A DNA stretch of 64,000 bases from Ylistrum balloti (GCF_031769215.1 NW_026782152.1:930001-994000), one strand, 5' to 3'. Shown: positions 35,689 to 53,483, counted from the stretch's first letter. Notes: generated by a model not told the origin, from the sequence alone. Made by a program: numbers and translations.

Positions 35689-36018
35689 TGCCCAAAATCT
35701 TTAGAATGGTAGTTATTTCTCATGGCGTAACACTAAGCATTGACGGGTTCGCCATAGTCAGTATAAAGCTACCGGCTGTGGTGTTCGTCTGGTGGCCTTT
35801 GAAGTATACTTCAGTAAATCGGCTTCAGTTCCACATTATCTTTAGGAGACTTCCATGAACATATCGCAGCCTCCCAAATGTACGAACAATCAACATATGG
35901 ACTCATCTCCCATACACCGGTAGACCATTCTTAACATTCAAAGTTCATAGCTAGAAACGCGTTAGAGAAATTAAAAATGTAACGATTAAAAGATACAAGG
36001 TACAAAATATGTACAAAC

Positions 36019-37497
36019 CTTTTCAGCAAGAGACACCGAGATCCTGCCAATTCCATCTGTAAAACAGTACATTTAATTTTTAATGTCATGCACATATTTT
36101 ACAATTCCATCGCGGATCGGAATTGCGGCCTGCGCAGAAGAGAAACATAATCCCATGCGTGATACATATGTCGCTACACACCTTTCAATGCTGAGGTCGC
36201 CAATATCATTTCGTATTGTCTCTGGCGTTATACCGTTGTAAGAACAAAAGAACCATACTCCATGGTCACGTAATTGACTATTGGAACAGGACAAGAACTC
36301 GTACCTTCTCTCCCCAATGGTGAATCCTTTGTCCATGAACGTACATATTCGTTCAGTGATTTCTTGAAGTCCATCTCCACTAAGTTTTGTAAAATCTTCA
36401 TCTCTGAAGATCACACGTATGAAGAAATCATCATTGTACTGGCGGAGGATTCTGTTTAAGACGATAGGTTCTTTCGCGAGAGAAATCACGCGACTGGGTG
36501 TGACAACTAGCCGTCTGGACATAGTGAAATGGGGAGGCATTTCGTCATCACTGTCCTCTATTGAATTTTTGACATGTTGAAAACTTTCCTTGAATGCATT
36601 GTCGAAATCAAACAATTGATTACTTTCAGCTTTCCTGGCCATGTCATGGAATAGGTCTGGAGTTATATAAGACTCGTGTTCCTTCAACAAGAGTGCTGAT
36701 TTTGAGGTGATCGCGTCTGTTACTGAAGCCGCACGAGAGAAGACAGTGCCATCCATATTCAAGATCAAACGTGTTGAACTGAAGTTGGCAAGTTCGTTTT
36801 GTTTTATCCGTGACATTAGAATAGACGATTGAAAATCCTTGTCGCTTAAACCTCCCTAAGATATTCCAAATATTTGGCTGCTTCTCATCTAATTGTCCTT
36901 TAAGTTTGTTGTCTGGAATAACCAAACAAATGACAGAGGTATTTCCGAAATCATCCGCGTCAGTAGAACGTATCGACAAAGCGCGTACCTCATGAGCATC
37001 TAATGTCTGTTTGAAATAAACTTTGGGAACATATTTCAATCCAAAGTAGAGCTGTCAAGAGCATTCACGGTAGTTAGCAACCACCCTGTCTTCAATATGG
37101 TTATATGGTATTTGTACAATCTCTGTAGGGCGCTTTATTTCAATTAAATCTCTATCATGGTGAAACGATGCGTTCCAATATTCTTTTGTACTAAAAAATG
37201 AAAAAGGTGTCAACGATTTCCTAATGCTCCAGTGGCAAATGAAGCTATTTGATGACACCACAGCACCACCGCGCATAGTGACGGTTTTAAAAGTGGTAGA
37301 TGATTCTGCGTTGTCTTCTGGTTTGTACATCCAGCGTTCCACTGGAATGACCTCCATCCAAGCAGCATGTCCAATTTTGTCCTGGAAAACAAACCACCTC
37401 TCAAATAGCAAAGACTCAAGTTCTTGTACACTAACATTATCCTGAAGTTCAACGGTGGCTTTGTAACTAGAATCGCCGTCACCAAAACTCTTTTCAA
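36019..37497 (-). pseudogene. Pseudogenised paralogue of RdRP exon 2
   Basis: Aligns by eye with exon 2 of the intact gene (AWMEVIP, FDLEYGW..CGF, HFTMSRRLVVTPSR, IRVIFRDEDF, FLSCSNSQLRDHGVWF, TYVSRMGLCFS, YCFTDGIGRIS). Acceptor and donor are at the same positions and phases. Lesions: TGA at 37055-37057 (at a Trp position), a frameshift near 36722 and TAA at 36073-36075. No downstream catalytic exons are seen. Confidence 0.9.
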
Positions 37498-42100: not shown

Positions 42101-42774
42101 AAATGCTTTTTGTATAAAATGTAAAATGTAAAAAAAAACATGAAAGGTCTCGAATTAATTACGAACTTAACTATTTCTCACGGTCATTTGAAATCGGCTG
42201 GTCATGTATCAGTTAATTTACCAGCTAACTTCCATGTGTTAATACAGTAACGACTGCTTTAATTCGCTATAGTCAAAATATCGCAGTTTTATCATATGCT
42301 TAATCTAAAAGGGATGCACTTTTTGCGAAAGCAATAGAATGGACATTGTTTTTCTTCATCAATTATATTTTCAAGGTATCAATTTTTCGTGACTTTATTC
42401 AACCGTTGAAAATAGCGAAAATTAGAAACCCTCAAATATTAAACTTTATAATATGTTGTTAGCATATGCTATATTCAATCTCTTAAATCATCTTTTTGTT
42501 AATTATATAAAAAAAACAATGCATGATGTCATTAATATGTCGTTAATAATTACCAGGTGTTTTCGTTCAAGGTTGACCTTTTAAGAATTTAGCACCGTCT
42601 TATCCATATATTAACATGACTACCTAGGTATCAGTTGGTAACTTATAAACATTTGTAATACCACACAGATAGTCAAACATATTTCTTTATGGATAGGTAT
42701 GTGTATAATTGTACAGGTAATCAGGTGTAATGTTATAGACATTGCACAGATAAATATATGCATTATTAAACACG

Positions 42775-44700
42775 TAGGTGTGTATATTGTTTTACAGGTA
42801 GGTGTGTGTGTTGTTGTATATGTAGGTGTGTGTATTGTTGTACAGGTAAGTGTATGTATTGTTGTATATGTAGGTTTGTGTATTGTTGTACAGGTAGGTG
42901 TGTGTATTGTTGTATATGTAGGTGTGTATATTGTTGTATATGTAGGTGTGTGTATTGTTGTATATGTAGGTGTGCGTGTTGTTGTACAGGTAGATGTGTG
43001 TATTGTTGTATATGTAGGTTTGTGTATTGTTGTACAGGTTGTTGTATTGTTGTATGTGTAGGTGTGTATATTGTTGTACAGGGAGATGTGTGTATTGTTA
43101 TATATGTAGGTGTGCGTGTTGTTGTACAGGTAGATGTGTGTATTGTTGCATATGTAGGTGTGTATATTGTTGTACAGGTAGATGTGTGTATTGTTATATA
43201 TGTAGGTGTGCGTGTTGTTGTTTATGTAGGTTTGTGTATTGTTGCATATCTAGGTGTGCGTGTTGTTGTTTATGTAGGTTTGTGTATTGTTGTATATCTA
43301 GGTATGTGTATTGGTGTAAAGGTATATGTGTGTATTGTTGTATATGCAGGTCTGTGTATTGTTGTATATGTAGGTGTGTGTGTTGTTGTACAGGTAGATG
43401 TGTGTATTGTTGTATATGTAGGTTTGTGTATTGTTGTAAAGGTAGATGTGTGTATTGTTGTATATGTAGGTGTGTGTGTTGTATATGTAGATTTGTATAT
43501 TGTTGTAAAGGTAGATGTGTGTATTGTTGTATGTGTAGGTGTGTATATTGTTGTACAGGTAGATGTATGTATTGTTGTATATGTAGGTGTGCGTGTTGTT
43601 GTACAGGTAGATGTGTGTATTGTTGTATATGAAGATTTGTATATTGTTGTACAGGTAGATGTGTGTATTGTTGTATGTGTAGGTGTGTATATTGTTGTAC
43701 AGGTAGATGTGTGTATTGTTGTATGTGTAGGTGTGCGTGTTGTTGTACAGGTAGATGTTTGTATTGTTGTCTATGTAGGTGTGTATATTGTTGTACAGGT
43801 AGATATGTGTATTGTTATATATGTAGGTGTGCGTGTTGTTGTACAGGTAGATGTGTGTATTGTTGTATATGTAGGTGTGTGTGTTGTTGTATATGTAGGT
43901 GTGTATATGTATGTGGTTTGTGTAGGTTTGTGTATTGTTGTAAAGGTATATGTTGTTGTATATGTATGTGGTGTGTATGTGTAGGTGTATTGTTGTTTAT
44001 TGTTGTAGGTTTGTGTATTGTCGTATATCTAGGTGTGCGTGTTGTTGTTTATGTAGGTTTGTGTATTGTTGTATATCTAGGTATGTGTATTGGTGTAAAG
44101 GTATATGTGTGTATTGTTGTATATGTAGGTTTGTGTATTGTTGTATATGTAGATGTGTGTATTGTTGTATATGTAGGTGTGCGTGTTGTTGTTTATGTAG
44201 GTTTGTGTATTGTTGTATATCTAGGTATGTGTATTGGTGTAAAGGTATATGTGTATATTGTTGTATATGTAGGTGTGCGTGTTGTTGTACAGGTAGATAT
44301 GTGTATTGTTATATATGTAGGTGTGCGTGTTGTTGTACAGGTAGATGTGTGTATTGTTGCATATGTAGGTGTGTGTATTGTTGTACAGGTAGGTGTGTTT
44401 ATTGTTGTATATGTAGGTGTGGGTGTTGTTGTATATGTAGATGTGTGTATTGTTATATATATAGGTGTGCGTGTTGTTGTACAGGTAGATGTGTGTATTC
44501 TTGTATATGTAGGTTTGTGTATTGTTGTAAAGGTATATGTGTGTATTGTTGTATATGTAGGTCCGTGTATTGTTGTATATGTAGATTTGTATATTGTTGT
44601 ATAGGTAGGTTTGTGTGTTGTATATCTAGGTGTGTATATTGTTATACAGGTAGATGTGTGTATTGTATATGTAGGTGTGCGTGTTGATGTACAGGTGTAT
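42775..44700. repeat. Degenerate 24-bp GT-rich minisatellite (~80 units)
   Basis: Consensus GTAGGTGTGTGTATTGTTGTATAT; the + strand is strongly depleted of C. It produces spurious VGVCIVVY and CRCVYCCI ORFs. Confidence 0.92.
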
Positions 44701-45474: not shown

Positions 45475-48400
45475 CTACGAAATGTCCGAATCGAACTGTT
45501 CGCCTAGATGTTCAATTAGTTCCCAGACATCTTCTGCATACTGTTCCCACTCGGTGTCTTCTGTCTCTAATGAGGGAAGTTTGGGAATTACTGTGACTTC
45601 CTGTTTCTCAACCATGTCTTGGAACCGGCCACTAGCATCTGGTATTGAGTATTCTAGCACTCTTGCTATTTCAATACTCATATCTTTCCATATGTTGTAA
45701 TCGGTCACTGGTCCGTCATAATGATACGTTCTAACGTGCTTCTCTCTTACGAATGGTACCCTGTCCTTAAACTCCTGACAGACATACAGAATATTCGGTT
45801 TGGGCTGAAGCAGAACGGTGTTGTCAGGGTCTAAAAGCATTTTCGTGTCAGTCATCTCTCGCACACCCTCCAAATCCATGAGGCGTCTTGATTGCAGCTT
45901 ACACCGTACATCAAGACGTTTCCTAGTATTGGACATGTCGGCATAGCCACGACAGACATCTACTGCCATCCACTTCAAGTCTGAAAGACGTAGTTCAATG
46001 AATCTGAGATCTTTGTCAAGAACAACTTGACCTTCGTGTCGTTTTCCATAATCTTGATTACCCATTTTGAATGTTGCGTGAAATTTCACTTCTTCATGCT
46101 GCTCTCGGAAAAACTTGTTGAGCAGAAAAGCACTGACATTGTTTTTGTCACATTCCAATGGCATAAAGGAGGTCCGTATGTGTCTTGGTCTTGGCTTCGT
46201 AAACCTGCTATGCCTTTTGCGATTTCGCCATCTGCCACGTCCCGATGGGTTGAGTTCTAATTTCTCTTCCTTTCGGTAGGTATTGCCATTCATTTCCATT
46301 TCCAATTCTGAAATGGTGAATTGGGGATTGTCGACATAGAATATGTAGTATATTCCAAATGTGATTGCAATCCGTAGTTCCCCATGATATGTACTCTCAA
46401 AATCTTGTCGGATAAGCTCTATCTGTGTCCTGAATACTTCTTTGAACATTTCCAAGGATTTTCCGTTATCCTGGTTGGACGAGTCTACAGACGCAATGTA
46501 TAATGGGATCTCCTTGTGCGCTGGTTGACACCTCCCTTGATAACGTTCGAATGTGAGTTGCTGATCAGGGCCGGTGGACCCGTAGAATAAACGCTTGAAG
46601 GCGCCACCAATAAAAGCTTTGTCACGAGCCGCGGTAGTGATAAACTTTGATGATTTGTCATTGAGGTTTTGTAAGGAATGCTGGACATCCCATAACTGCT
46701 CTCGAGTTCCCCACGCCTCTAGTATAAGCCCGGGAGTGTCTCTATATGTCTTTCTGCGAATGCTGATTTCGGCACCTGTGTCCGCCGATAATCGTCTAGC
46801 AGTATATGTTTCTGCGAACATTACAGATCCCCAGATATCTAACGGCAGGTTTATCATCAGATGATCTTCTTCAATGATGTTTTGGTCGAAGAAGGCACTG
46901 ACAGATCTGTTTTTTGCGATTTCCTGGTAAACGAAGAGAATTTCTTCCGTGAGGTGTTTGTATTTCCTCCAGTCTATCTTGCCAGGGAATAGAAGCCGTC
47001 GACTGTTAGTATCTGTCGGGTCTGGCAAAGATATCTTAAACATTCCATTCTTGTCCTCATTCAGTAGAGAATTAAACGTTCTCAAGACGGTTAGTAGAAG
47101 ACTAGCTGTGTTGGCCTGATCATTTGATGATATCTTTCCTGGAAACCAACTTTTGTTCAGGTCTACAGGCGCTGCTGTTGGGTTGCTGTCTGCATCTGAC
47201 AGGAGTTTTAGGACAAGCATCACAAACACTATTTCATTGAACAATGCATGTCTGTTTCTGCCAACGAGTCCAAACTTCCTCCCCCAGTCAAGGAGAAAAG
47301 TTAAAATAAGCGTATAGTATGGACGTTTCTGGAGTTCTTGACGGATAAAGTCCGTTCTGTTCTTATCGATGGTGTTTTGTGAAAACGTTACTGTAACTGG
47401 ATCATCATTTGTTGGGATTACATATGACACTGGAGATACATTCTGGTAGGATCTCATACCATACTTTACGCGACGAGTGAAGTCTTCTTTTGACAACCGC
47501 TGAGGGAAATCGAGACAAACATCAATTTCGCTCGTGTATATGTCCATCAGACACAATGATTGCATTCCTGTAATTGACAGCTTTATCTCTTTGTTAACAT
47601 TGTGATATAGGTGGCCATGAAGCATGCCGAAACATTCATGAAGAAAACGAAACGTCTCATCCCGGTCTTCATGTCTCATATCGAAATGTCGAAGTATCGA
47701 TGAACCGATTTGAGCAAGGACTGGCCGTTCTTGATCAAGCTTTATGTCCTTGATTTCGTCTCTTGTTGAAGACTCTGCATCCGATTTCATCTCAGACAGG
47801 ATCTCGCTTATAATCCAGGGAAAACTGACAAGGCGCTTACCTGTGCTGACTTTCTGAAACTTAACATCATAGGCAACAATGTACCATGCTGACGCCTTAG
47901 CCAGGATTTTCCTCTTATTATCTTCGGAATTTGATGGGTATAGCATTTCTTCGCCGAACTCCTCAAAGAAGTCTGCTCGCACGTTTTGCCTAATCACGCT
48001 CATTTTACCCTGAATAACTTTCCCCAATTCATATTTTTCATTCTGAAGATAACCACGCTTCTTCTTTAGCTTCTGTATAATACCTGTGACAATTTCTGCT
48101 TCAGTTTCCACACCATACAGAGACATCAGCTGTAAGATTTTCTCATTATACATGTCATACGAAAGTTGTGCGGATTCTAAATATGTCTCATATCCCGGAT
48201 ATATCATGTCTGGATCAATAACAGTTGCGTGTTGAAGAAGATCTATTTCATATGTACGACTGTGTGCATGCTCCAAAGATCTACACTGGCGAAATAATTT
48301 ACCTAATACCTTGTTGGATGTATAACGAGGTTTGTCCGATTTCATCATGAAATCCGGGTACTTTTCACATCTCAAGTCTTGAGTCATCTCTGGTACAACC

Positions 48401-51400
48401 CCAGTTTTTGGAAAGTCAACGGCATCTGAGTGTTTCCTCGACAGATTGATGCATTCCTCACAGAAGATATCTTTAATATCTGCATGGACAACGTGTGCAT
48501 TAGCAATAACGCCAAGCTGATCATTTCTAATGTACTCTGATATAAAATGTGTGACATCTGATACTTGGACTGGTCGGGGTAATTTTGATTTGTTCGGAAT
48601 TTGGAAGTCCATAGCTGTTTTGTTTTCCCCTAAGGGATGCATCTGCTTATCCCAGCACACAAAGTACATATCTCCATCTAAGTCTGAACCAGACATCTCG
48701 TCTGGATGTGGTCGATGTCCTTTTTGAGGAAACACGATGCAATCAACGTGGTGATGCAATCCAGGCACATCCACTGCCTTAAACTTCCGCAGATCTCCTG
48801 GATGGAAACAGGGGTTTTTAGCAACGACAACTTCGGTGTCAAGAATTGTTATACCTCTGAAATTCATCCCGTCGTGCTGTGTGTAAGAGACAAAGATTTG
48901 TCCGTACTCCAATGTCCCCGTTTCGTCAGTAGTGCCCATCATGCTCCTTCCTTGATCATAATCTATCTCGATTCTCGTCTTTCGAATCAACTCGGCGAGT
49001 TTGCGTTTGTATATTGTCATTAATATTGACCTAAAGAACGCCTCGTCAATAAAAGAAATCCCAGCCCTCATTAGGTCCATGTACTTCATTCCAATGTTGA
49101 CCTGTAAGGAACAACAACCCAACTAACAAGATTTGTCGGATAAAGTGAAACTGCAAAGGACCGAAGAAACATCAGAAATAAAGACCAAGATGTATATGAT
49201 GAAGTTAATTATTTTCAAAATTAACAACGAGGCTGACAAATTAACATGTCTTCTTTTAATACTTTAAACGATGATGCATGTTTGTAATAGCTTGATGAAG
49301 GAAGAGTGTTATTTTTAAGGAAGGCATAAAGGAAACAATGAGTTTGCTTATAAAGTGGATGTTCAATGTATATATTTTCAGTGATTTTATATCATCTCAG
49401 AAAAAAGAGAAAACATAATCCACCGAGAATACCAACATTTACAATATTTCAAAGCTGATATTCATTATTCCTGTAATCAAAACGTTTGTGAGACGTTCTG
49501 AAAATACAAAGATGAATGTTAAATATCCAACACTACAGGTAATTCATTTACTTTAAACATCTTTAAATCAGTCTCCAAAAGTCATTATATACTAGAAAAT
49601 GTTTTGCCCCATTTAATTTTGACAAAATATTGATTTACATAGTCTTAATCGAGTCTAAATAATTTTACAACTTAGAAACAAAAACACTCTTTAAAAGCAA
49701 CATGAAATGTGGCGAATCCGATAACGAGCGAATTTTATGCAAAATGAAGTTTAGACTGCCGTTAACAAATCCCAGCAGCTTATAAACCTGAACTCACATT
49801 TTCAAATCTGTATCTATGATAAAATTAGCACCTGTTCAGATCTCTTACTAAAACTTACATTTGACCATTCTCTTTCACTAATACGTATCTTGTAGTTTTA
49901 TAATTGGATCATAATTAGTACGATTACAAGATGACGACCTGTAATTTTATCAAAGGGAGGTGCCTTAGTTTTCGATATTTTTTCCGTCACATATTGGTTT
50001 GGTTTGGAGCGTTCTTGATTATAATTATAACTACTACCTATATATCTCTTAAAAGTAAGTCATTGTGATAACAAAATGATTCCGGTGACGTTAACAATAC
50101 TTTAAATTATTTAGTTTTCGCGAATACTCTATTTGCAAATTTACCTTTTCAGACATATTGGCAAATACATGATTTCGCGAACGCTGATCTCAAAATGGCT
50201 TAAAATTCGCGAATGGTGGTGCTATCAGAGACCTAGACTCCGATATTGGTAACCAAAGAATGAATATTTTATTTACTTACAAATAATCGCGAACGGATTT
50301 GAAGTTGCGATTGACGCGAAATTAAATCCCAAGCGAAATACAAGTTATTTGCAGTAGATGGCATGAGCAAATTGATGTGTTTTCTCCCATTTTCAGAAAT
50401 TGAATAATTCGGCTGTATCGGAGAATGAGTGTACATGTCAGCTTACACCAATGCTGAGAGCTATTATCTTATAAACTGTTTAGGGAACTCACCTCGGATA
50501 GCGCACGTAAGGCCCTCTTATTTTCGAGCAGCATGTCAGCAATGTTAAAAAGCATCTTCTCTTGAAGCGACATGAAAACGTTGTCTGGGACTCCCAGTCC
50601 TGACATCAAAGTGATCACTTGTCTGTTTAAGTGCAACTGACCTGGTGATTTGAAATGAAATTGATACATTGGAAATATGTTTACAGATTACAAAGATGAC
50701 AATTAGATTAATTTCAGTTAATTATATATACCCGGTATATTTCATTTTGATGAACAAAATATTACCAGGATGAGTTGTCTGCAATATTTCTAGGTTTTTA
50801 GAGGGAGATTCGAATTTGCGCATGCTGCCACGGATATGGATTTGCTCTGTCTTTCCAAGAGTGGGATCCATGGCGATTACACCTTTGCAACCACCGTAGC
50901 GGATCTGAAATGCCGAAGGCACCGGATCCATCTTCAAGGAACCAGCAACCTAAAAACGCGTGAAAATTGAAAAAAAGAATTTAAAGAAAGAAGATTATAC
51001 CTAAGAAAGTATGCTTTTGAATCACATATTTTCTACTAATCTTGATGTTACATAGATTTTTCGGTATCCTATTTATTCTCTGTGAATTTTTTGATTGGTG
51101 TTGGAGTTATATAGAAAAATGAATTAAACATATTGATAGACACGATCGTAAGCGAACATTTTTTCACTTATTTTACTTAAAAATCATATAAAAGCTATAC
51201 AAAAAGGGAAAGATTACAGATGAAGATGAATTCGCCTACGATACCTTTTTCGCTAAGGGTACTGAAATCTTCCCTATGCCATCTGTGAAGCAGTAGGATC
51301 CCAATTTCACGTCATCAATGAACTTAACTGAACCGCGATCTACATCAACCTCCACAGTAGCTCGGGATGCTGAGAAACATAATCCCATGCGAGACACATA

Positions 51401-53483
51401 CGTGGCAACACATGTCTCTTTAGTCAGATCACCAGCCGCGAACCTGATGCTTTCTGCCGTCTCACCGTTGTTAGGACAAACGAACCACACTCCATGTTCA
51501 CGTAACTGACTGTTTGAGCAGGCTAAAAACTCGTACTTTCTATCGCCAATTTGGAATCCATGGTCCATAAATTCTTGAAGACGATTTGTAATGTTTTTGA
51601 ATCCTTCTGAACGAGTTGCGCTCAGTCTAGTGAAATCTTCATCACGGAATATCACGCGGACGAAAAAGTCGTCATCGTACTTTCGAATAATCCTGTTTTG
51701 AACAATCGGTTCTTTCCGGAGTGGAATCATACGAGTTGGAGTGACAACTATTCGTCTTGTCATAGAAAAGTGAGATGGAAGTTCTTTTCTCTCATCTGGA
51801 ACGCTCAAATGGTCAAATCTCTCTTGGCTTTTAGTAAGAATTCTATCGAATTCAAAAAATTGGCTGTTGTCAGCACTGCTTGTCATTTCCTGGAATACCT
51901 CCGGAATCAGTACAGATTTCTTTTGCTCCAATAACGCCAATGACTGTTCTGTTATAGCGTCTGTCACTTTAAAGCCACAAGCGAGGAGACTTTCCCACGC
52001 ATAGTTAAGATCGAAAGTGTCGAATTTTATTTTATTAACTTGACGATTCTCGGGGTCTTTGACGGACACATTGGCATAGGAAATTGAAAATCCATGCCTT
52101 TTCAATCTTGCCATAAGTGTCCACATGCTATTTTGGTCTGTGGATGTCGATGGCGACGGTTGTTCTTTCTTGTTATCAGGCACATCTAAACATAGAACAG
52201 AGGTAAAGCCTATGTTTTCTCGCGTGACAGAAGTGAGATGGACCATCCTTTTCTCTTCCATCTGGTCAGATTTAGGTCTTTTAGATTTTTCGATAATTTT
52301 CGGTGGATATTTTAGTCCAACATAAATGTGCCAGGCATTTCTGTTGTGATGTGCTATCATAGTGTCGCTTAAAATACTGTAAGCTATTTCCATGACTTCT
52401 TCGGTGCCAAAACCGCGTTTCCGGGTAACAGATAAAAGTTCATTATCATGTTCAAAAGTGACTTGCACTGTGCCAGCTACCGACCAGTGCTTAATGAATA
52501 CAGTTGGCGATATCATGGCACCTCCTGACACCACACTATCGACACTACTAACAGACGAAAGCTTGTTGGATATCTGGTAAGCCCGACGTTCTGCAGGGAT
52601 AACTTCCATCCATGCTAACTTCTCGGAATCTTCCTGGTAATTAAACCAAGCACGAAATAGCAATGTTTCAAGATCCTGTACAATGGTTCCTTTGGGCAGG
52701 TCAAGCGTCGACTTTAAACTTTGATTACAATCAGCAAAACATTTCTCGCCTGTAATATTAAATTTAAATGACATTACAACGGGTTTGAGTTCGAAAACTC
52801 TATCAATATCAAAGGAAATACGGATAAAAGCATATTGTGGTACATAGTTACGAATGAGATATAAACAATGTATGACTCTCACCTTCTTCGTCTGGTTTTT
52901 GTTTAACGACTGTGACGTTTGACGGAAGATAACTGTGGAGAAACCGCCTTGCAGACTCATTATTAGACAAATAGTGGAATATAACATCGCACAGACCATG
53001 GTAGGTGTGCCTTTGTTCAGGTGTTTTACTCGGTGCTTTTTGTTTCTTCCTATTCTTCCTACTTGGTAGTTTCGGCTTCTCCTGCTTTGATGTTTGTTGA
53101 TCTTGGTTTTGAGAAGATGATGAATTGTTGGTAGTTTCGGCTTCATTTTGGGATGCTAATGGATTGTTCGTAGTTTCGGCTCCATTCTGGGATGCTAATG
53201 CATTGTTCGTAGTTTCTGCTCCATTTTGGGATGCTAATGGATTGTTCGTAGTTTCGGCTCCATTCTGGGATGCTGATGAATTGTGGGTAGTTTCGGCTTC
53301 AAGTTGGGATACTGATGAACCGTGGGTAGTTTGATGCTCTGTAGAATCTGGTTGAGGCGTTGGATCCTCCGTTTTATTCACAGTTTCTCCATGCTGTAAA
53401 AGTATCTTTCGCGTTTGGTGATTGGGAGGATCCTCAGAAGGGTCTTTGAAACGTGCTTCCTTTTGCTCCTGTTGTGATTCCAT
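45475..53483 (-). CDS. Cellular (eukaryotic) RNA-dependent RNA polymerase, RDR/EGO-1/QDE-1 superfamily, ~2021 aa, with a long C-terminal extension
   Basis: Exons 53483-52883, 52749-51245, 50949-50766, 50641-50493 and 49101-45475 (GT-AG, phases 1,0,1,0; 6066 nt in frame). Motifs: FLACSNSQLREHGVWF, RMGLCFS, YCFTDGIGKIS, PSAFQIRYGGCKG, LNRQVITLM, KNPCFHPGD, catalytic SGSDLDGD (DLDGD at 48684-48670), KHSDAVDFPKTG, KYPDFM, ASAWY, SFPW. Confidence 0.96.
50098..50356. mobile_element. Degenerate MITE-like element in RdRP intron 4
   Basis: Imperfect termini TACTTTAAAT / ATTTGCAGTA and several internal TTCGCGAA/CGCGAAA motifs in otherwise CpG-poor intron. Confidence 0.4.
53118..53330 (-). repeat. Coding 39-bp tandem repeat (~5 copies, AETTNNxLASQNG) in RdRP exon 1
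   Basis: Repeating GTAGTTTCGGCTCCATTCTGGGATGCTAATG.ATTGTTC on the + strand; 13-aa periodicity in the translation. Confidence 0.85.

Follow-up and report, generated by a model that had tools for sequence, protein, structure and literature searches.

What does a gene for a cellular RNA-dependent RNA polymerase (RdRP) encode in the long coding stretch that follows its polymerase domain? This question is raised by a locus of the scallop Ylistrum balloti, contained in a window of 64,000 nt (GCF_031769215.1 NW_026782152.1:930001-994000) to which all positions given here refer. A single open reading frame (ORF) of 1215 codons runs on the minus strand from 49122 to 45475 without an internal stop, and over its residues 434-1215 it matches the C-terminal end of the NCBI protein LOC132550843 from the same species (2021 aa; P0001) with 100% identity. 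Past the RdRP head no stop occurs for another 782 codons, here called the extension, close to the ~770 estimated in a preliminary description of the sequence. That description proposed that the RdRP is fused to a Cid1/terminal uridylyltransferase (TUTase)-like nucleotidyltransferase (NTase) and to a KH domain, both degenerate. Our analysis of family profiles and predicted structures supports both assignments and adds a third domain, a triphosphate-tunnel beta-barrel whose closest structural matches are the trypanosome guide RNA (gRNA)-binding proteins RESC1 and RESC2.

The features of the gene described below all lie on the minus strand. The region belongs to an intact RdRP gene of the cellular QDE-1/RDR type, of which it forms the terminal exon: mapping of P0001 onto the window by tblastn gave five coding blocks in total, the terminal one being the ~3.6 kb last coding exon of LOC132550843 (45478-49104, P0001 residues 813-2021), followed by the stop codon at 45475-45477. 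The C-terminal half of the RdRP catalytic domain lies at 48283-49086 (ORF residues 13-280), where Pfam PF05183 matches with an E-value of 1.4e-87 over profile positions 300-582, and positions 1-177 of the same profile are matched by an upstream exon (E 7.1e-43). Both characters of eukaryotic cellular RdRPs are therefore present, the PF05183 match across the double-psi beta-barrel catalytic domain and the DxDGD loop, which a motif search found as an intact DLDGD metal-binding loop (DLDGDMY, 48664-48684). The RdRP head domain follows at 47803-48255 (ORF ~290-440); all full-length relatives carry a precomputed PF26253 (RdRP_head) match, and the head ends in a conserved SFPW, within the sequence SFPWIISEIL at 47797-47826 (~47790 in the preliminary description). 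Pfam finds nothing beyond the RdRP on the scallop ORF alone, even at E<=1, and family profiles and structure prediction were therefore needed. A phmmer scan of 1.8 billion cluster representatives returned 76 matches, 44 of them at E<=1e-10, and a head-region phmmer search identified 28 sequences with an RdRP head directly upstream of the matching region, anchored at S/G-F/L-P-W. By word-indexed search the RdRP and extension are also found together in three other scallops (Pecten maximus, Mizuhopecten yessoensis and Argopecten irradians), whose extensions are 60-67% identical to that of Y. balloti, in the oyster Crassostrea virginica (35%) and in the amphioxus Branchiostoma floridae (26%), and word-indexed protein searches with the distant relative P0051 and with alignment A1 recovered self or close matches only.

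The first domain after the head (46909-47724, ORF 467-738) is assigned by profiles and models to the Cid1/GLD-2/TUT family, and consists of a catalytic palm and a central/PAP-associated helical domain. A profile of the 28 sequences over extension residues 1-325 (A2) matches GLD-2 in the PDB with an E-value of 3.5e-11 and T. brucei TUT4 (TbTUT4) with 1.6e-6, followed by CutA and Tailor. The AlphaFold2 (AF2) model computed on the A2 alignment has a mean predicted local distance difference test (pLDDT) score of 87, with values above 90 for the overall fold including the central domain. Its top 50 Foldseek matches are mostly TUTases and non-canonical poly(A) polymerases (ncPAPs), the few exceptions (CdnC, CCA-adding enzyme) being other NTases of the Pol-beta superfamily. 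With VIA-align, Z-scores of 19.6 (URT1), 19.4 (TUT7, GLD-2 and CutA) and 19.2 (Cid1) were obtained over 250-270 aligned residues. The best-matching Swiss-Prot models are those of Cid13, GLD2, Cid14, Cid1 and Cid11, and all language-model neighbours of the domain fall in MTPAP-like or PAP-OAS1 clusters. The scallop domain thus has the two-lobed palm and central/PAP-associated fold of Cid1, GLD-2, TUT4-7 and URT1 (Z ~19), with which it also shares the N-R-T...W-A/G-R-K helix motifs. An OAS/cGAS-type synthase was considered and rejected, since CD-NTase matches appear only low in the Foldseek list and the profiles favour GLD-2/TUT. The motifs quoted in the preliminary description are all present, within ~100 nt of where it placed them, and the start of the NTase stretch, which it put at ~47685, was ~100 nt too high; in order of translation we find IKLSITGM at 47563-47586, SEIDVCL at 47512-47532, PVTVTF at 47383-47400, NRTDFIRQ at 47338-47361, SLLLTVLRTF at 47074-47103 and ISLPDP at 47017-47034.

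The fold is that of the family, but the active site is not. In register with GLD-2, the scallop domain has G519-M520 (47563-47568) for G-S, E532 (47527-47529) and D534 (47521-47523) as E-x-D for D-x-D, and T579 (47386-47388) for the third Asp, and so lacks both the hG[GS] motif with its serine and the complete set of three carboxylates. Other bivalves have GI, GV, GL or GT at the first of these positions, and even among scallops the motif positions vary (GM/GI/GV/GL; EIC and DIN variants). In a motif table of the 28 members all named animal sequences are degenerate, and a large environmental group has GS with S-x-D but no third Asp. The combination of GS, DxD and hDh occurs in two members, P0051 and P0076, which are also the only ones with all three carboxylates, and in an unrooted maximum-likelihood tree of the KH-tunnel region these two fall with P0067 and P0045 in a clade set apart with 99/98 support. 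This pattern suggests that the animal NTase-like domain is probably a pseudo-enzyme, as are the inactive N-terminal NTase of TUT4/7 and the DZF domains. Several distant RdRP-fused relatives match Pfam MTPAP-like_central and NTP_transf_2 directly after the head, and P0028 (30.7 and 24.4 bits) and P0076 (E 4.6e-12) lie above the curated Pfam cut-offs for NTP_transf_2/MTPAP-like_central; automatic Pfam annotation likewise places RdRP and MTPAP-like_central on some environmental sequences, though not on the animal proteins. That distant relatives keep GS, DxD and the third Asp is in line with the earlier proposal that the chain is a fusion of silencing partners.

The NTase-like domain is followed by a degenerate type I KH fold (46645-46881, ORF 748-826), with a strongly conserved LEAWG strand and the motifs INLPLDIWG (46828-46854) and QHSLQNL (46663-46683). 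In a second AF2 model, of extension residues 300-782 (KH and tunnel; pLDDT 83), DSSP assigns the beta-alpha-alpha-beta-beta-alpha order of the type I KH topology to model residues 22-94, and VIA-align superposes this part on Nova-1, MEX-3C, IGF2BP3, PCBP and hnRNP K (Z 7.0-7.6, rmsd 2.7-2.9, ~73 residues). The top 11 PDB matches of profile A3, among them IGF2BP2, IGF2BP1, Nova-1, hnRNP K and KSRP, are all KH domains aligned at the same profile positions, with modest E-values of 9.6e-5 (IGF2BP2) to 0.04. Pfam KH_1 matches none of the members, and five have a weak match to DUF7636. The GXXG loop is absent: F-A-E-T is aligned with G-K-G-G of the IGF2BP KH, and no family member has a conserved Gly at this position. 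Profile searches and structural comparison of the AF2 models, checks of the kind that the preliminary description had suggested, recover both the Cid1/TUT7-like NTase with its PAP-associated fold and the KH fold, and both domains are degenerate as it had supposed.

The extent of 46660-48690 given in the preliminary description stops short of a third domain, encoded by the last ~390 codons (45487-46617, ORF 836-1212). These last ~380 residues are strand-rich and confidently modelled in the second AF2 model, and form an antiparallel beta-barrel tunnel of the CYTH/Cet1/RESC type according to the model and two structural searches. Foldseek places RESC1-RESC2 (8cdp, 8fn6, 8fn4) first, with E-values of 6.8e-12 to 5e-9, then the RNA triphosphatases Pct1 and Cet1 (3.5e-5 to 4e-4) and then CYTH proteins. 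A VIA-align run against ~48,000 representative chains, independent of Foldseek, gave Z 20.6 (291 residues, 3.5 Å) and 19.7 for RESC, followed by Cet1 (14.8), Pct1 (13.5), T. cruzi Cet1 (10.5), mimivirus triphosphatase (9.7) and YgiF (8.4). Over the 240-290 residues aligned with RESC1/RESC2 the scallop domain is ~11-12% identical, and unlike these proteins it is fused to RdRP, NTase and KH domains instead of forming a free heterodimer. Pfam RESC1_2 CYTH-like (PF25477) matches two of 32 members weakly (E 0.025), and a tunnel-only profile (A4) reaches RESC1 with an E-value of 0.36, not significant alone, in an alignment that pairs the family strand D-V-R-x-K-L-Q-S-R with D-V-R-L-L-L-R-S-R of RESC1. 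The kinship with RESC1/RESC2 is therefore strongly supported by predicted structure, and not by sequence alone. RESC1/2 have been said to have no homologs outside kinetoplastids, and reports of RNA triphosphatases of the tunnel type are usually confined to fungi, protozoa and viruses (PMC10201420).

The distribution of charged residues bears on what the barrel may do. Conserved on its strands are (in ORF numbering) K1050, D1071/R1073/K1075, R1126/K1128, E1157 and K/R1173/E1175. The basic residues occupy alternating strand positions (1050, 1073, 1075, 1126, 1128, 1173), a periodicity that suggests they face the tunnel, and the two Glu residues are on the last two barrel strands (E1157 in 27/30 and E1175 in 29/31 sequences). 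The first barrel strand has the consensus HGxLRxxxxFG, with E-L-R in the scallop, and a charge scan, in which the register was inferred without coordinates, did not find the ExExK/motif A glutamate pair on it; no member matches Pfam mRNA_triPase or CYTH. The RESC2 tunnel binds a nucleoside bearing a 5'-triphosphate and lacks metal-binding Glu residues, RESC1 and RESC2 both being without two of the three found in Cet1 (PMC10201420). Absence of the Cet1 motif-A pair, conservation of the putative tunnel basic residues and, in a weak profile alignment, the D-V-R-x-x-L-x-S-R strand are shared with RESC1/RESC2, and the charge pattern appears more like that of RESC2-type binders than that of Cet1-type hydrolases. 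The barrel is also interrupted by a disordered Arg-rich insert (RGRGRWRNRKRH-type; 46195-46278, ORF 949-976) with pLDDT <50 at model residues 217-244, whose RGRxR core is kept in the family consensus, with a conserved R at model position 232/234.

Comparison of the domains shows that the extension is not uniformly constrained. Identity to Pecten, oyster and amphioxus is 82%, 62% and 57% in the RdRP core, 81%, 58% and 39% in the KH-like domain, 76%, 41% and 33% in the main part of the tunnel domain, and 55%, 24% and 19% in the NTase-like domain. The KH and tunnel domains are thus constrained comparably to the polymerase, being nearly as conserved as its core, and the NTase-like domain is the least conserved and most relaxed part. 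By sequence comparison bivalves and amphioxus share the NTase-KH-tunnel arrangement, which many environmental sequences from eukaryotes also have. In two distant relatives the set is larger. In P0076, a single ORF of 1851 aa from a Logan assembly, a Helicase_C domain closest to those of LGP2, MDA5, RIG-I, Dicer and the Dicer-related helicase (DRH) is joined to an entire RdRP, after which come an NTase that is significant by Pfam and complete in its active site, and then the KH/tunnel region. P0051 is encoded on a TARA Oceans scaffold (L001, 1406-13411) on which DEAD/ResIII and Helicase_C ORFs and further RdRP ORFs lie upstream on the same strand. As far as predicted domains go, the entire set of an assembly like the RNA-directed RNA polymerase complex (RDRC) is present in cis in P0076, where one ORF encodes it, and in L001, where neighbouring ORFs of the same orientation do, and the family spans helicase-RdRP-NTase-KH-tunnel forms whose NTase is predicted from its motifs to be active and animal forms with RdRP, pseudo-NTase, KH and tunnel.

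The module also occurs apart from the polymerase. In the AlphaFold Database (AFDB) clusters the top match is another 'RNA-dependent RNA polymerase' with the same C-terminus, and the second, a protein of 983 aa named 'Poly(A) RNA polymerase central palm domain', matches the KH and tunnel domains over its residues 461-983; this is apparently an NTase-KH-tunnel module without RdRP. In AFDB clusters and the ESM Atlas the KH-then-barrel arrangement is found again in fungal DUF7905, plant DUF7903, SLS1-like mitochondrial, and cnidarian and oomycete KH proteins, which unlike the scallop protein are not fused to RdRP, and for which we found no tested function. Judging by these modelled structures, RESC1/2 of kinetoplastids may have the fold of a family that extends across the eukaryotes.

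In Mizuhopecten yessoensis, four related gene models (P0004, P0005, P0009 and P0010) lie on one contig of 1,480,524 bp. P0005 (753 aa) covers the extension without the RdRP part, and in P0009 and P0010 the NTase palm (extension residues ~50-155) is missing. This suggests either that the gene models are partial or that members of a tandem family have lost domains.

In S. pombe, Tetrahymena and C. elegans, RdRPs work with helicases and with NTases of the Cid1 family. The S. pombe RDRC consists of Rdp1, the helicase Hrr1 and the NTase Cid12, Tetrahymena has Rdr1-Rdn1/2, and the C. elegans RdRPs act with DRH-3 and RDE-3/MUT-2. Like these complexes, the scallop protein pairs a QDE-1-type RdRP with a Cid1-family nucleotidyltransferase, to which a RIG-I/Dicer-type helicase is added in P0076 and L001. 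It differs from them in that the partners are domains of one polypeptide, in that the animal NTase lacks GS and the third Asp, and in the additional KH and triphosphate-tunnel domains, for which we know of no counterpart in RDRC-type complexes. From these similarities we consider that the scallop protein is probably a single-chain counterpart of RDRC-like complexes, equipped with a pseudo-NTase and a module that would bind or process 5'-triphosphate ends. The chain would then have built in the RdRP-NTase (and helicase) complex known in trans from the S. pombe RDRC, Tetrahymena Rdr1-Rdn and nematode RdRP-DRH-3-RDE-3. In the animal lineage the NTase may have turned into a pseudo-enzyme that serves to hold a partner or the 3' end of an RNA. 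DZF domains and the N-terminal, inactive NTase of TUT4/7 offer parallels, and the preliminary description had similarly envisaged a 3'-end/template sensor. De novo RdRP products bear 5'-triphosphates, and the tunnel domain could grip these as RESC2 grips the 5'-triphosphate of gRNA, or, alternatively, the 5'-triphosphate of uncapped templates. Polymerisation might thereby be coupled to end recognition and hand-off.

Several observations weigh against this single-chain reading. The link to amplification of RNA interference (RNAi) is uncertain because amphioxus, which has this architecture, has no detected RdRP-dependent secondary small interfering RNAs (siRNAs) despite intact RdRP genes (Pinzon et al. 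2019, PMC6396948). NTase and KH membership comes from family profiles and AF2 models, the scallop sequence alone falling below Pfam thresholds, and which of the conserved Arg, Lys and Glu residues line the tunnel is read from strand periodicity. Some residual NTase activity is conceivable because E-x-D is retained, as is a purely architectural role because DZF pseudo-NTases are dimerisation modules and RESC1/2 dimerise.

One different account of the extension makes the tunnel domain an active metal-dependent RNA 5'-triphosphatase, which would convert the triphosphates of RdRP products to di- or monophosphates for Argonaute loading or for evading innate sensing. PIR-1 acts in this way on triphosphorylated RNA in C. 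elegans, and the scallop barrel shares its topology with Cet1, Pct1 and the mimivirus triphosphatase (Z 14.8, 13.5 and 9.7), as well as Glu residues on the last strands (E1157 and E1175), conserved alongside the basic ladders. Unlike these enzymes, however, it has no conserved ExExK pair on its first strand, matches neither Pfam mRNA_triPase nor CYTH in any member and stands outside any capping apparatus, and the non-catalytic binders RESC1/2 are its closest structures by a wide margin. We therefore regard hydrolysis by this domain as unlikely, if still worth serious consideration.

It is also possible, though we think it rather improbable, that the extension is chiefly architectural, with the pseudo-NTase and RESC-like barrel serving homo- or hetero-oligomerisation or partner recruitment and no direct reading of RNA ends. 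The DZF dimerisation domains (NF90-NF45, ILF2-ILF3) reach Z 18.1-18.4 with the NTase model, nearly as high as true TUTases, and because of this the fold alone is silent on the role of the inactive domain; RESC1 and RESC2 dimerise via a swapped hairpin (PMC10201420), and the KH domain is without GXXG. Against a solely architectural role are the alternating basic residues on the barrel strands and the conserved Arg-rich insert, the profile affinity of the NTase-like domain to GLD-2/TUT and not to DZF proteins, and the relatives with an intact NTase active site, which argue for an ancestral function at RNA ends.

Surviving terminal transferase activity of the NTase-like domain, by which it would tail templates or products, seems highly improbable: E532-x-D534 keeps two carboxylates and the overall fold is intact, but Thr occupies the site of the third carboxylate and Met that of the GS serine, and the motif positions vary freely among scallops, in a domain less conserved than any other in the protein. 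That an error of annotation or assembly joined the RdRP to an unrelated downstream stand-alone gene or transposon ORF has only the unusual exon size in its favour and a negligible likelihood, being effectively refuted by the 1215 codons without a stop and by 28 independent sequences, of scallop, oyster, amphioxus and metagenomic origin, that have the same head-to-NTase junction, in agreement with the AFDB top structural neighbour, another RdRP with the same C-terminus.

If the single-chain reading is extended to the whole clade, bilaterian and other eukaryotic, its RdRPs could be self-contained, RNA-end-coupled polymerases. The RESC2-like tunnel would capture or hydrolyse the 5'-triphosphate of their own de novo products, or select 5'-triphosphorylated (uncapped, e.g. 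viral) templates, and the pseudo-TUTase/KH pair would position the 3' end. We offer this as a tentative speculation, one that we hold more doubtful than credible; if true, the hand-off of products or the choice of non-self templates would follow a mechanism that has so far gone unrecognised, and the trypanosome gRNA-binding RESC1/2 would be members of a pan-eukaryotic family.

The conserved pseudo-TUTase, KH and tunnel domains of amphioxus, oyster and scallop give testable handles on the function of RdRPs in animals outside nematodes, such as binding or hydrolysis of 5'-triphosphate RNA, 3'-end binding and deletion mutants. In the Rosetta-stone sense, the fusion ties animal RdRPs to RDRC-like complexes. 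The architecture further suggests that Cet1-like tunnels occur in animals and that the RESC1/2 fold, reported to be without relatives, is part of a wider eukaryotic family. Partnership of RdRP and NTase is already known; what is new is the single-chain form with a predicted pseudo-NTase, a GXXG-less KH and a RESC/Cet1-like tunnel in animals. We found no description of an RdRP-NTase/CYTH/KH fusion in the searchable literature, whose open-access coverage is limited and which gives no proof of novelty. For the amphioxus RdRP candidates only AAA_12 (helicase) has been recorded as an extra known domain (Pinzon et al. 2019, PMC6396948), and a 2026 RdRP domain study makes no mention of NTase or KH domains or of a C-terminal extension.

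The upstream coding blocks of LOC132550843 lie at ~53483-52878, 52750-51239, 50949-50758 and 50645-50487 by tblastn of P0001. These exons (50487-53483) encode the RdRP domain's first half, preceded by an N-terminal region of 13-aa repeats and a PH-like region; the ORF at 51239-53146 has weak matches to Pfam PH_met_RdRP/PH_fung_RdRP. The repeats, which are of the ASQNGAETTNN type and lie in the protein's N-terminal low-complexity region, are encoded in the first coding exon by a 39-bp tandem repeat of ~5 copies (53120-53319). A broken paralogue of the gene's second coding block is present on the minus strand at 36013-37495, where it corresponds to P0001 residues 202-704 with 35-56% identity. 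A frameshift and in-frame stops interrupt it, and downstream exons are not detectable; a second functional RdRP copy was rejected for this broken fragment, which probably arose by local duplication and is a piece of a pseudogene. Beginning ~800 bp downstream of the RdRP stop codon, a GT-rich 24-bp minisatellite of ~81 copies with strong GC skew occupies 42774-44691, and accounts for the long Cys/Val/Tyr-rich pseudo-ORFs there.

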